A stretch of 64,000 bases of DNA from Scyliorhinus canicula. Taxonomy: Eukaryota. Every line of letters starts with the position of its first letter. The stretch's first letter is position 1. A program made the translations under genes and the position numbers. The stretch spans positions 72,967,790-73,031,789 of the forward strand of contig NC_052150.1 in NCBI RefSeq assembly GCF_902713615.1, in the 5' to 3' direction. Under the pieces are notes generated by a model. The model had not been told where the DNA came from, did no database searches, and saw nothing but the letters and a program-made list of their open reading frames with translations. Positions 12,371 to 58,736 of this stretch are shown in pieces.

Positions 12371-12720
12371 TTTTAAAAAATTAATTTACAGCGTGTGAAT
12401 GTCACTGGCTGTGCCAGGATTTATTGCCCATCCCTAACTGCCCTCCATTTCAGAAAGCATTTGAGAGTCAACCATGTTGCTGGGGATCTGGAGTCACATA
12501 TAAGCCAGACCAGGTGAGGGTGGTTATTAAGGACATTAGTGACCCAGATGGGTTTTTAACAATAATCGGCAATAGTTTCATGGTCACCGTTCGACTTTTA
12601 ATTCCAGATTTCCATTGAATTCAAGTTTCAACATGTGCCATGGTGGGAATCGAACCTGGGTGCTCAGAATTAACTGTGGGCCTCTCGATTATATGTCCAG
12701 TGACAATGCTATTACCTCCC
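12371..12720 (-). mobile_element. tRNA-headed SINE related to the 50193-53405 LINE
   Basis: Aligns to 52495-52620 plus 53275-53405, and to the tail at 50200-50265. Confidence 0.75.
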
Positions 12721-15484: not shown

Positions 15485-15845
15485 AGGAGTGGCATAGTGG
15501 TACAGTATTGTCATTGGACTAGTGATCCAGAGGTCCAGGATCATGCTCTTGGGACCCTTGTTTGAATCCCACACCATGGGTGTGGATGGTGGAATTTGAA
15601 ATCAATAAAAGTTTGAAATTAAAAGTCAAATGATGACCATGAAACCTTTATCAATGTCCTTTGGGGAAGGAAATCTGCCATCCTTACCTAGTCTGGCTTG
15701 CGTGATTCCAGAACCACAGTAATGTGTTTGACTCTTAAATGCCCTCTGAAATGGCCTAAAAAAACCACTCAGTTCAAGGACAAGGAATGGGCAACAACTT
15801 ATAACATTTTTTGTGACGCCTACACCCCATGAAAGATTTTTTTTT
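15485..15845 (+). mobile_element. tRNA-headed SINE; internal-deletion derivative of the 50193-53405 LINE family
   Basis: Head and 5'UTR align to 53405->52465 (minus), then jump to the LINE 3' tail. Confidence 0.75.
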
Positions 15846-28984: not shown

Positions 28985-29660
28985 ATATGGGCATCTCTGA
29001 CAATGCCAGCATTTATTGCCCAGCCTTATTTTTTTCTATTCATTTACAGGATGTGGGCATCGCTGGTTAGGCCAGCATTTATTGCCCATCCCTAGTTGTC
29101 CTTCAGAAACTGATGGTCAGCCACCTTCTTGAACTGTTACAGTCAATCTGGTGAAGGTACGCCCACAGTGCTGTTAGGTAGGGAGTTACAGGACTTGCAC
29201 CCAATAGCAGTGAAGCAATAATGATAGGTTGCAAGTGGGATTTGCAAGTAGTGGTGTTAGACCATGCATTTGCTGCCCTTGTCTTTCTAGGTGATAGAGC
29301 TTCTGGGTCTGGAATGTGTTGTTCAAGGAGCCTTGGCAAGTTGCCACAGAGCATCCTGTAGATGGCACAGACTGCTCCTTCTTTGTGTCAATGGTGGAGA
29401 GGGTGAATGTTTAAGCTGAGGGATGGTATTGAGCTTCTTAAGTGCTGGTAGAGCTGCACTATTCAGCCAGGCAAGTGGAGAGTATTCCATTACACTCCTG
29501 TCTTGTGCCTTTGGGGAGTCAGGAGGCGAGTTACTTGGCACAGAATTCCCAGCCTCTGACCTGTTCTTGTAGCCAAATTAATTTTTATGGTTGGTCCAGT
29601 TAAGTATTGAGTTAGTAATCAACCCGAGAATGTTGATTGTATGGGATTTATGATAGTAAT
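28985..29660 (-). mobile_element. 3' fragment of the same LINE family as 50193-53405
   Basis: ggatgtgggcatcgc..ggccagcatttattgcccatccctagttg tail; peptide MEYSPLAW. Confidence 0.75.
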
Positions 29661-49858: not shown

Positions 49859-50001
49859 CTTTTTAGTGGAATTAATGGCTGTGCTTAGCACAGATCCTAG
49901 TTTAATGATCTCTTTGTTCTCTGAAACACATTTGTAGTAGTTCTTCATTTGGGCAGGGATCAGTAAATTCACAGATGCAGAGGTATCTGAGATGCTGCCA
50001 T
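49859..50001 (-). CDS. DNAH5: DNAH5 exon, 143 nt
   Basis: [29 protein letters not shown]; ttcag|AT acceptor, AAG|gtaac donor. Confidence 0.9.
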
Positions 50002-50192
50002 CTGAAAGAGTGGACAACAAAATAAAGGATATTACAATATTGCAGTTAATTGTTATTTTGTATCTTACATATATTTCAGGAAGATGCACCAAATGTGCCT
50101 TATAGGCATGAGATCTAGGTATCACAAATGAATAAGGTTCAATAAAGATACACAGTACTGCAAATCGAGAATTCCTGCTCCAACCAACAAGT

Positions 50193-53100
50193 TTTTAAAA
50201 ATGTATTTATGGGATGTGGGCATCGCTTGTTAGGCCAGCATTTATTAGCCATCCCTAGTTGCCCTTCAGATGGTGGTGAGTTGCCTTCTTTAAATGCTGC
50301 AGTCCCTGGGGTATAGGTACACTCACAGTGCTGTTAGGAAGGGAATCCCAGGATTTTGACTCAGCGACAGTGAAGGAACGGCGATATATTGGAGGGGAAC
50401 CTCCAGGTGGTGATGTTCCCAGGTATCTGCTCTTCTTGTCCTCCTAAATGGTAGTGGTCATGGGTTTGGGAGGTGCTGCCTAAAGGACCTTGGCGAGTTC
50501 CTGCAGTGCATCTTGTAGCTGGTAAATACAGTTGTCACTGTTCGTCGGTGGTGGAGGGATTGAATATTTGTGGAAGGGATAGCAATCATGTGGGTTGCTT
50601 TGTCCGGGATGGTGTCAAGCTTCTCGAGTGTTGTTGGAGCTGCACCCATCCAGACAAGTGCACAGTATTCCATTACACTCCTGACTTATGGCTTGTAAAT
50701 GGTGGACAGGCTTTGAGGGGTCAGGAGGTGAGTTACGCAATATAGGATTCCTAGCCTTTGACCTGCTCTGGTAGCCATAGTATTAATACGGTTAGTCCAG
50801 TTCGGTTTCTGACCAATGGTAACCTCCAGGATGTTGATTGTGGGGGTTCAGCAATGGTAATTCTATTGAACGTCAAGGGGCTATGGTTAGGTCCTCTTTT
50901 GTAGGAAATGGCCATTGCTTGGCACTTGTGTAACACAAATGTAACTTGCCACTGGTCAGTCTAGCCAGGATATTGCCCAGGTCTTGCTGCATTTGGACAT
51001 GGACTGCTTCAATCTGAGGAGTCATGAATGGTGTTAAGCATTGTGCAGTCATCAGTGAACATTCCCACTTCTGACCTTTTAATGGCAGAGAGGTCATTGA
51101 TGAAGCAGCTGAAGATGGGTGGGCCTAGGACAATACCCCTGAGGAACTCCTGAATTGATGTTCTGGAGCTTAGCTGATTGACCTCCAACCACCACAACCA
51201 TCTTCCTTTGTGCCAGGTATGACTCCTACCAGCGGAGAATTTGCTCCCGATTCCCACTGACTGCAGTTTTGTTAGGGCTCATTGATGCCCTACTCGGTCA
51301 AATGTTGCCTTGATGTCAAGGGCAGTCACTCTCATCACCTCTGGAATTCAGCTCTTTTGTCCATGTTTGAATCAAGGCTGCAATGAGGTCAAGAGCTGAG
51401 TGACTCTGGCGGAAGCCAAACTGAGTGTCTGTGAGCAGGTTATTGCTGAATAAGTGCCGCTTGATAGCACTGTCAATGATTCCTTCCATCACTTTGTTAA
51501 TGACGGAGAGTAGACTGATAAGAGGTAGTTGGCTGGGTTAGATTTGTCCTGTTTCTTGTTTACAGGACACACCTGGACAATTTTCCACAACGCCAGGTCA
51601 ATGCCAGTGTTGTAGCTGTACTGGAATAGCTTGGCCAGGGGTGTGGCAAGTTCTGGAGCACAAGCCTTCAGTTGTCGGAATATTGTCAGGGCCCATAGCC
51701 TTTGCAGTATCCAGTGCCTTCAACCATTTCTTGATATCCCATGGAGGGAATTGTATTAGCTGAAGACGGCATCTGTGATGCTGGGGACCTCTGGAGGAGA
51801 TTGAGTTAATCAATTCGGCACTTCTGGCTGAAGATTGTCGCGAATGCTTCAGCCTCGTCTTTTACACAGATGTGCTGGGCTCCTCCATCATTGAGCAAAG
51901 GGATATTTGGGAAGCCTCCTCCTCCAGGGAGTTGTTTAATTGTCCACCACCACTAATGGCTTGATGTGGCAGGGCTGCAGATCTTAGATCAGATTGATGT
52001 GTTTGTTGTGGAATCGGTTAGCCCTAATGGTGGACAGTACGTACTAATCAGCAGGAGGTTTCCTTGCCCATGTTTAACCTAAAACCATGAGACTTCATGG
52101 GGTCTAGAGTAGATGTTGAGGACGCCCAGGGAAAACTCCCTTACGACTTTATACCACTGTGCCACCATCTCTGCTGAGTTTGTCTTGCCAGTGGGTGAGG
52201 ACATACCCAGGACTGGTGATAGTAGTGTCTGGGGCATTGTCTGTAAGGTATGATTCTGTGAGTATGAATATGTCAGGCTATTGCTAGACTAGTCTGTGAG
52301 ACAGATCTCCCAACTTTGGCACAAGCCCCAGATGTGAGAAAGGGGGAGTTTGCAGAATCGACAGGGCTGGGTTTGCCTTGTTGTTTCCGGTGCCTGGGTG
52401 AATGCTGGGAAGTCCGTCCAGTTTCATTACTTTATTGTGTTTTTTTTGTAACAGTTGAATACAACTCAGTAGCTTGCTCGGCCTTTTCAGAAGGCATTTA
52501 AGAGTCAGTCACATTGCTCTGAGTCTGGAGTCACATTTAGGCCAGACCTGGTAAGGACGGTAGATTTCCTTCCCAAAAGGACATTAGTGAACCAGATGGG
52601 TTTTTATGACAATCAGCAGACTTTCAGGTCGGGATTCTCAGAGACGGCGTGGGCTCAGAGAATCGGCGTTCACGCCAAGACAGCCTGCGACGCTGGTCCG
52701 ACACCAGGACGCGCACCTCCGGCGACTGGAGAATCACTGCGAGTCGCACGCGCGCAGTCGATGCGGCGCAGGTCGGGGGCCATTGAAAGAGGCCCCTGCG
52801 CCGATTCTGCGGCGGCAACTGGCCGAGTTCCACTGGTGTGGTTCTGATGGTTCCACCCGGCGGGCACTCGGAGTCGCGGCTGCGGTGGCCGTCCTGGTGG
52901 GGGGCGTGGAGGGGGGGGGGGGATCCGTCACCGGGGGGCGCCTCCAGGATGCCCAGGATCATGATCGGGAGCCACTGATCAGCGGGCATGCGCAGTCTGG
53001 GTGGGGACTATTTCTTTGGCGTCGGCCCGCTGTGTGGGTCCACCATGTTGCGCGAGGCCGGCGCCGCAGCTGGCCGCAGCACGCATGACCGGACCTGTGC

Positions 53101-53405
53101 CGGCAGTGCAGGGCTACGCATCGGCAGCTGGAGCTTTGTGGAGCACTCCGGCACCATGCTGGCCCCTGTGGTCCACGGAATCGCTGGGCCAAGGAGCCTA
53201 TTGACGCCGGCGTGAAACACGTCGCTGTTTATGCCGGCACCAACACTTAGCCGCTGTTTTGAAGAATCCCGGCCTTGATTCCAAATATTTTATTGAGTTT
53301 AACTTCCATCACCTACCGTTGTGGGATTCGAACCCAGGTCCCCAGAGTATTACCCTGGGTCTCTGAATTCCTAGTCCAGTGACAATACCACTACGCCACT
53401 GCCTC
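50193..53405 (-). mobile_element. Decayed CR1-group LINE with EN and RT remnants and a tRNA-like 5' head
   Basis: EN remnant PDIFILTESYL..PGYVL; KAMGPDNIP; LGPPIFSCFINDL..MFTDDCT; MEYCALVW; A box TGGCGTAGTGG and B box GGTTCGAATCC at the 5' end. Confidence 0.8.
52627..53274. mobile_element. CpG-rich MITE inserted in the LINE 5'UTR
   Basis: TIR ggtcgggattct / agaatcccggcc; internally similar to the 38455 copy. Confidence 0.8.
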
Positions 53406-53790
53406 GCCTTTGATTTTGGTGTGACAAGGTGATAGAAATTTTACTTTTGAAAATGACTTTACGAAAATATGGACAAATGCTGAACTGAAAAGATGTCAAT
53501 ATATTCTGTTTCTGTGTTGCTTCCCAGTGAGTGACCTACACTAACAAAGCTGACTGATTTGATTTTTCGGGTTCAAATTACTAGGCCGCTATGTGTCTAC
53601 AGTTATCACGTTCTCCAAAACATGCTTTTAAAGCAATGATAATTTGATAAAAGATCAATTTACGGGGAAAGGCCATGAAAGCTGGACTCAGTGAATAGCA
53701 CTTTCAGATTTCATTCTGTGCTGATATGATAAAGGATTCAATAACAGCATGGATTTTGTAATAATTTGGAGCGCTTGAAATATGCATTAC

Positions 53791-58113: not shown

Positions 58114-58736
58114 TGGCGGGATTCTCCCTTCTGGGGACTAAGTCCACATGCCCGCCAGAAAACAGGCAAGGATCACTCCAGACTTTTTCCTCGAAGGTCC
58201 GGGGTGATTCTCCAGTTTCCAGGGGGCTTGCAGAGCCCGGCGTGCGTTCCGTGGCTCTGGCTGCCGGCGGGGCCCTGCTAGCCAGACCACGCGGCCGCAC
58301 ATGTGCATGGCGGCCGCAAGCGTGGGTTCCGCCAACATGGCGGAGCCACACAGCGGGCCCGCACGGAGGAACGTAGGTCCCTCCCAGATAGTGATAGCCT
58401 GCCGATCGGTGGCCCCCAATCATGGGCCTGGCCACCGTTGAGGCCCCCCCGGAGTCAGATACCCCCTGCCCGCACCAGGACCGCCACCGTGGCCGTGGGT
58501 CCCAACTCCTGCCGGGTGATACCACATGTAAACCACGGCAGCAGGAGTTCGTCCGGTCCACCGCGGGGTCTGTTCCAACAGCTCCCGACCGGCGCCGCAT
58601 CAACTGCGCACGCAGGACTGGCAAGTCTGCAGAGAATCGCGGAAGCACCGTCGTGCTGGATTTCCGGCGAGAAGGGCTATTCTCCGTCCCCCGCGCCGGG
58701 CACGATTCCGGCCCGGAGGGTTGGAGAATCCCGTCC
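58114..58736. mobile_element. CpG-rich MITE
   Basis: TIR ggcgggattctcc / ggagaatcccgtc; left part similar to the 30903 copy. Confidence 0.78.

Follow-up and report, generated by a model that had tools for sequence, protein, structure and literature searches.

In the present study, a 64,000-nucleotide stretch of the Scyliorhinus canicula genome (contig NC_052150.1, positions 72,967,790 to 73,031,789; hereafter the window) was analysed with respect to a long interspersed nuclear element (LINE) copy on its minus strand at 53405-50193. We consider it likely that this copy is one old, dead LINE of the CR1/L2 group with a single open reading frame (ORF) and an APE-type endonuclease, and that, throughout the family, the 5' region is made up of the tRNA-derived head plus the conserved core of an abundant short interspersed nuclear element (SINE), followed by a LINE-specific linker of ~85 nt that leads into ORF2. 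The copy was inserted as a single piece, from its SINE-type 5' end through the LINE tail; it is without part of the endonuclease, and a miniature inverted-repeat transposable element (MITE) hit it after the insertion. Its parts follow in the order head, MITE, core, linker, N-terminus of the endonuclease, internal deletion, reverse transcriptase (RT) remnants and 3' tail, and the minus-strand anatomy of the original prediction (head, MITE, leader, endonuclease, RT and tail) was confirmed in every detail checked. The copy itself is dead and contributes no functional evidence. The architecture observed is far beyond chance, the composite LINE has multiplied as a single unit in no fewer than two or three species of elasmobranchs, and the arrangement is a real family-level LINE-SINE architecture.

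The boundaries of the element were determined from the depth and joints of the Logan contigs of runs X1, X3 and X10, which represent two species (X10 is that of organism B). Both flanks have single-copy depth (~4-6 in X1, 2.4 in X3 and 14-16 in X10), and depths of 10^4-10^5 are reached inside the element. The similarity of hundreds of contigs ends just past 53405, where their loose ends share no consensus (agreement 0.36), and this end, with its single-copy 5' flank, coincides with the start of the SINE copies described below. At the other end, the family similarity ceases at ~50205 and gives way to A/T-rich sequence. In contigs of organism B, each end of the element adjoins its orthologous flank, with a divergence of about 4-5%, and therefore the insertion is older than the split of the two sequenced species. 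A target-site duplication (TSD) was sought around the whole element and around its SINE part, where a TSD would have marked an independent SINE insertion, and none was found around either. One near-repeat, AAAATCAAAGGC in the 5' flank and AAACAACAAGGC at 52384-52373, was rejected as a TSD since AAACAACAAGGC is conserved LINE sequence that is also present in two database contigs of the family, L001 from ENA and L002 from a JGI metagenome.

The element begins with a tRNA-like head and the first spacer of a SINE-type leader (53275-53405, minus strand), as delimited by ARAGORN, SINE alignments and contig ends. The A box (TGGCGTAGTGG, ~53394-53384) and the B box (GGTTCGAATCC, ~53335-53325) are both intact on the minus strand, and ARAGORN reports a tRNA-like gene at 53387-53313 on the same strand, so that the features of a tRNA-derived SINE head are present; an Rfam search of the head gave nothing at gathering score, as expected for a derived head. 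The head is followed, after the MITE, by a conserved core of ~165 nt (52463-52626, minus strand), putatively Deu-like, which was recognized from alignments to the SINE, to L002 and to the depth contigs. Two copies of the SINE lie in the same window. SINE copy B (15485-15845, plus strand) has the head, the core and a decayed LINE-type tail, and SINE copy C (12371-12720, minus strand) has a head decayed at its 5' end, the core and a LINE-type tail. The head of the LINE is 73.5% identical to copy B over 136 nt and 70.8% to copy C over 120 nt, and the core is 79% identical to copy B over 124 nt, 74% to copy C over about 150 nt and 85.7% to L002 over 133 nt; the leader is common to both SINE copies down to about 52463. 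The core reaches a depth of 189,000 in X1, compared with about 5 in the flanks.

At the opposite end, the 3' end of the ORF and the 3' untranslated region (UTR) occupy 50193-50460 (minus strand), of which the last ~65 nt (about 50268-50205) are the tail shared with the SINE and precede the A/T-rich end. The tail of SINE copy C aligns to the LINE at 50268-50192 with 71% identity over 77 nt (E 2e-8), and another LINE 3' end, located at 29170-29042, matches this region with 80% identity. A joint from 52490 to 50256, representing the form in which the leader runs straight into the tail, was observed in the contigs of X1, X3 and X10, i.e. in three runs and two species. In other words, the SINE equals the first ~290 nt of the LINE joined to its last ~65 nt, with a 3' tail from its partner LINE, and the two earlier-noted elements of ~350 bp are indeed the head and leader fused to the LINE tail, as both the alignments and this joint demonstrate. 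Thus, the LINE and the SINE share not only the tail but also the module where transcription must start. The second LINE 3' end belongs to a 5'-truncated fragment of the same family at 29042-29601 (minus strand), which is 77-81% identical to 50193-50800.

Between the core and the endonuclease lies a linker of ~85 nt (52380-52462, minus strand), which is absent from the SINE and holds an ATG at 52427-52425. No other copy of it was found when one was sought within the window, and it is common to L001, which has the motif ACCYAGGCACCGGAAA, and to three EukProt gene models from whale shark (Rhincodon typus), P0001, P0010 and P0017. The possibility that the linker is a decayed SINE tail was rejected, because its local alignment to four SINE or LINE tails was no better than that of shuffled sequences (z -1.5 to 0.0).

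The recurrence of this join beyond the locus is the evidence that makes it a family trait. A phmmer search and a word search with P0002 yielded five whale shark models that have the region immediately before the endonuclease in common (P0001, P0003, P0010, P0017 and P0018), and three of these, P0001, P0003 and P0017, extend back into the SINE-like core. P0001 (MAQQATQLYQS...) and P0017 (MAEQAISVV...) begin within the core, at its 3' edge, and run via the linker into the endonuclease; by tblastn, residues 2-51 of P0017 fall on 52482-52327 and residues 2-55 of P0001 on the same stretch. The N-terminus of P0003, MSFREGNLPSSPG, corresponds to the translated core (in the window, LMSFWEGNLPSLPG) and is followed by the endonuclease, so that the N-termini of both P0003 and P0017 map to the core. 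At the DNA level, L002 is collinear with the window from the core to the endonuclease, with 73% identity over 473 nt, and its upstream part is a decayed head from which the B box has been deleted; L001 shares the linker motif and the start of the endonuclease with the window. In addition, the depth at 52377/52378, upstream of the first endonuclease motif, is 594-1638 in X1 (flanks ~5), 247-698 in X3 (~2.4) and 2422-5018 in X10 (~14.5), about 100-350 times that of the flanks, and the X1 depth over 52341-52419 was estimated from bin means at about 2,300. The join is therefore not unique to this locus, which had been named as a point on which the composite would stand or fall, but recurs in P0001, P0003, P0017 and L002 and in the multi-copy depth upstream of the endonuclease.

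Other searches for relatives added little. A protein-pattern scan of metagenome contigs returned no relative, word searches with the N-terminal 74-aa piece and with residues 1-72 of P0001 returned nothing new, and the four matches to a 21-nt DNA pattern were rejected as chance, having no similarity to the element. L007 is 5'-truncated and uninformative. In L002, the endonuclease is followed abruptly by a short RT piece, and an inverted endonuclease fragment is also present; it was rejected as a neat intermediate between LINE and SINE, since the inverted piece marks it as a rearranged copy. As a separate observation, comparison of L002:1873-2018 with L007:938-1081 places the inverted endonuclease piece downstream of the forward start and the RT piece, an inversion plus deletion that resembles twin priming in L1.

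Three candidate start codons were identified around the linker. The most upstream, at 52485-52483 in the 3' edge of the core, reads AAG in the window and ATG in P0001 and P0017; the next is the ATG at 52427-52425 of the window, at the equivalent of which P0010 begins (MKLGG vs MKLDG); and the last, at 52379-52377, reads AGG in the window and ATG in L001, L002 and P0018. This last ATG (acaATGgca) was rejected as the start codon of the family, being in frame in P0018 but out of frame in the present sequences of both L001 and L002. The linker DNA that P0001 and P0017 have in common is translated in a different frame in each of them, which makes it doubtful that the linker is coding. These candidates lie within about 110 nt, so that none of them leaves space for an ORF1. 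An ORF1 was also sought in the two copies whose DNA extends to the 5' end, and none was present upstream: the window has ~330-365 nt of SINE-like and linker sequence and L002 has about 350 nt. The original prediction that there is no room for an ORF1 thus holds, with only ~330-365 nt available and a single-copy 5' flank, and no full-length copy with an upstream ORF1 appeared among these two 5'-complete copies. An ORF1 upstream of ORF2 is usual in CR1 proper, and a single ORF is ordinary on the L2 side (UnaL2, ZfL2-2). Counting from the ATG at the core's 3' margin (the region of 52479 in the window), the third codon following it is TAA in SINE copy B (15766-15768) and GAG or CAG in the window, L002, P0001 and P0017; this difference may be diagnostic for the SINE and LINE versions of the core, on the basis of very few copies.

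The start region of ORF2 and the N-terminal third of the endonuclease lie at 52028-52379 (minus strand), with stops and frameshifts, as recognized from translations, phmmer and tblastn. We take the endonuclease to be of APE type from its motif pattern, which includes PDIFILTESYLTDN at 52277-52236, a further motif LVPKLGDLSHRLV and a readable PDIFILTESYL. About 105 N-terminal residues survive, in short pieces without a Pfam match. A phmmer search of 1.84 billion representatives with a 42-aa piece (PDIFIL...GGTVV) returned 16 matches with E down to 2e-11, the best being LINE-like gene models of the whale shark, and L001 is 83% identical to the endonuclease start over 330 nt. By tblastn, P0002, P0017 and P0018 cover 52385-52028, where the alignment of P0002 ends at about its residue 98. 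The breakpoint of a large internal deletion follows at 51953-52027 (minus strand); here the endonuclease has lost its C-terminal part, together with the sequence that precedes the RT, P0005, P0019 and P0021 contain endonuclease segments without a counterpart in the window, and the next recognizable coding piece, WWWTIKQL...NDGGAQHI, begins at 51952. Five models (P0004, P0007, P0011, P0013 and P0014, the last two from the whale shark) have unrelated N-terminal sequence joined to the LINE at or near KQQPDIVILTESYL, and L007 is truncated at the same place, which may be a preferred point of 5' truncation or of splicing in the endonuclease start.

The RT and C-terminal region of the single ORF, with many stops and frameshifts, extends over 50461-51952 (minus strand) according to translations, a weak RVT_1 match and depth, which is 50,000-250,000 in X1. 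A stop-free piece of 73 aa (51537-51319) matches Pfam RVT_1 at E 1.4e-4 with 22.1 bits, below the cut-off of 29.6, and FGFR... together with motifs resembling ALDIKAAFD and FADD can be read in the translations. By our reading of the sequence, the tail, endonuclease and RT appear to be of the CR1/L2 kind. Reads of the oligo-dT RNA run X22, aligned at 80% likeness to 50000-53600 of the window, cover the RT and the 3' part 30-170 deep with one strand favoured, and the SINE core is also covered; they barely cover the endonuclease and linker, so the RNA of the family is either 3'-biased or derived from truncated copies.

The MITE-like block in the leader, at 52627-53274, is a secondary insertion and not part of the retrotransposon. 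It measures 648 bp with 67% G+C and has terminal inverted repeats of ~12 bp (GGCCGGGATTCT and GGTCGGGATTCT, with GGYCGGGATTCT as the repeat), and a partial second copy lies 5 kb away at 58330-58609. SINE copies B and C and contig L002 are continuous across the site, and the contigs of typical family copies skip the block with joints from about 52605-52615 to 53321, which together identify it as a later insertion of MITE type. The site reads TTAA in other SINE copies and the flanks of the MITE are TCAA and TGAA, a possible duplication of TTAA or TNA; the depth of the MITE family is 200-4500 in X1.

Several results weigh against a head-bearing 5' region throughout the family. Only the window copy and L002 reach the head at the DNA level, and each has suffered internal deletion or rearrangement; what the whale shark contributes is protein sequence, which stops within the core; and among the copies examined, no intact full-length copy with the head and no transcript start was seen. 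The depth falls about tenfold from the endonuclease (~18,000 in X1) to 52377/8, so that many endonuclease copies may begin with a different 5' end, may be truncated, or may have diverged beyond the reach of alignment. A contig of organism B (record 15 of X10) ceases aligning at 52379 despite 371 further letters upstream. Any one of three causes, truncation, an alternative 5' end or the divergence of non-coding sequence, could account for both the drop and this contig. Moreover, the linker of L002 is not alignable to that of the window (z -0.9), although the core (85.7% over 133 nt) and the endonuclease on either side of it are, which may reflect fast evolution, or a fusion or segment replacement that took place more than once.

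How the composite arose can be weighed against these data. The simplest explanation, that an independent SINE happens to lie beside a 5'-truncated LINE or that the junction is a one-off product of template switching, could draw on the density of SINEs and LINEs, at which chance neighbours are common, and on the length of the SINE-like part and linker, 364 nt without the MITE and about that of a whole SINE; with the same join in the whale shark and in L002, and a linker unlike any SINE tail, we regard such a local accident as very improbable. It is unlikely, though less so, that the head-bearing elements form a defective, non-autonomous chimeric sublineage, in which a SINE 5' module sits on a broken LINE and is moved in trans by a normal LINE with its own 5' UTR and perhaps an ORF1. 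The condition of both head-bearing DNA copies, the tenfold lower depth in the linker than in the endonuclease and the unaligned upstream part of the organism B contig are all compatible with such a sublineage, but the deletions of the window and L002 differ and are thus not a shared family feature, and open frames across the linker and the N-terminus of the endonuclease are retained at five whale shark loci.

A different origin, which we consider possible but less than probable, is that the SINE is an internal-deletion derivative of the LINE. The head and core would then have belonged to the LINE first, ORF2 would start in the 3' edge of the core, and loss of the sequence from ~52463 to 50268 would have produced a bipartite non-autonomous LINE in Kojima's sense with a Pol III-type head, the route proposed for SINE bodies by Kojima 2018 (PMC5786205). 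The SINE is exactly a 5' part plus a 3' part of the LINE according to the alignments and the contig joint, head-bearing copies with internal deletions do exist (the window and L002), and P0001 and P0017 open at the ATG in the edge of the core, with GAG or CAG in 4/4 LINE-linked copies at the codon that is TAA in SINE copy B. On the other hand, this TAA/TAG contrast comes from one SINE copy, the differing frames of P0001 and P0017 make the coding of the linker doubtful, and the breakpoints of the deletions differ between the window copy and L002, in both of which the deletion may postdate insertion. Furthermore, if the core is of Deu type, the tRNA-Deu SINEs of sharks, chimaera and coelacanth (PMC5499810) are probably older than the LINE family. 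The fullest version of this origin, an autonomous master that natively begins with a tRNA-derived Pol III-type head and conserved SINE core, has its ORF2 at or just after the core and gave rise to the most abundant SINE by internal deletion, seems to us quite unlikely. We lean instead toward the capture of an older SINE module by the LINE, because SINEs with a tRNA head and a Deu core are common to sharks, chimaera and coelacanth (PMC5499810), the core of the present element being only putatively Deu.

Herein, we propose that the composite arose by capture once or a few times. The more likely route would be recombination or template switching that set the older SINE 5' module before the short 5' UTR of the LINE. 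The composite could then have spread as a unit, with the module supplying transcription from the first base of the element and thus acting as an internal promoter carried in each full-length copy, and the shared tail would serve as the recognition site of the RT of the LINE, as in other stringent LINE-SINE pairs. Which RNA polymerase might use the module is a separate question. That RNA polymerase III (Pol III) transcribes the whole LINE from the tRNA-like head is, in our view, doubtful to the point of improbable. The A and B boxes of the window copy are intact and the 5' end of the element is that of the SINE. Only 3 internal sense-strand T4 runs occur in 2565 nt against 5.4 expected, with comparable other copies lacking the run at 3/3 sites, a shortfall that is not significant in any single decayed copy (Poisson P about 0.2), and L001 has no T4 run in 687 nt. 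L002, however, lacks a B box, and its linker contains a T4 run. The oligo-dT RNA reaches a depth of only 0.5-6 across linker and endonuclease, and no start was seen at the head. In addition, Pol III transcripts are uncapped and poorly translated, which counts against Pol III for a long RNA. The long RNA is more probably a product of RNA polymerase II drawn to the head or its vicinity than of Pol III.

These results bear on the origin of SINE bodies. The Deu, CORE and V domains of such bodies have been conserved over hundreds of millions of years, and their origin is a standing question. The only documented LINE input to SINE bodies is from RTE and Vingi, the two sources of LINE 5' parts, and no source had been identified for the conserved bodies, for which bipartite non-autonomous LINEs were proposed as an origin (Kojima 2018, PMC5786205); the Bov-tA model (Okada and Hamada 1997, as cited in PMC5786205) belongs to the same background. 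If a master with a native head were true, a Deu-like SINE body would gain a CR1/L2 LINE 5' origin, a kind of origin for which the survey of Kojima 2018 (PMC5786205) found no example, and a protein-coding retrotransposon driven from a Pol III-type promoter would stay possible. A CR1/L2-group LINE and a SINE that share head, core and tail make both the direction of donation and the role of the module in transcription testable in shark genomes. Full-text literature searches, to which the repeat libraries Repbase and Dfam were outside scope, revealed no paper on a LINE with such a head, and those made with the core motifs matched no paper. In practice, a repeat library in which this LINE is split at its border with the SINE part will wrongly annotate the 5' end of the LINE as an independent SINE insertion.

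Among known systems, UnaL2 with UnaSINE1, and ZfL2-2, have a single ORF (APE and RT) without an ORF1 and a stringent tail partnership with a tRNA-derived SINE, and such pairs are described as sharing only the 3' tail. The present family is like them in having one ORF with a probable APE endonuclease and a probable RT and a tail shared with a SINE, and unlike them in that the 5' part is shared too. Template-switch chimeras of the U6-L1 type are one-off products with the full 3' end of the small RNA at the join. As in these chimeras, sequence derived from a small Pol III RNA stands here directly 5' of LINE sequence; unlike them, the join has been passed on to many copies in more than one species, with no SINE tail at the end of the SINE part, so that neither a unique join nor a small-RNA 3' end was found. 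Another likeness is to the tRNA-Deu SINEs of the SacSINE1/LmeSINE1 type in sharks, chimaera and coelacanth, which have a tail of the L2-2_CM type and include those of whale shark, skate and dogfish (Luchetti 2017, PMC5499810). The SINE of the present study resembles them, in a comparison made by description, in its tRNA-related head, which has A and B boxes, in the conserved domain at its centre and in a tail that derives from a LINE, whereas their LINE homology is shown in the tail only (PMC5499810). With respect to the bipartite SINEs of Kojima 2018 (PMC5786205), the LINE concerned here is, by sequence reading, of the CR1/L2 group and neither RTE nor Vingi, and its own copy includes the head, whereas theirs was added in front, so that an RTE or Vingi donor with a head outside the LINE-derived part is not what the present element displays. 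Nevertheless, as in those bipartite SINEs, the SINE matches a LINE at both ends, the head and core of copies B and C corresponding to the 5' region of the same LINE whose tail the SINE has, and internal deletion of a LINE is a plausible source of the SINE body.

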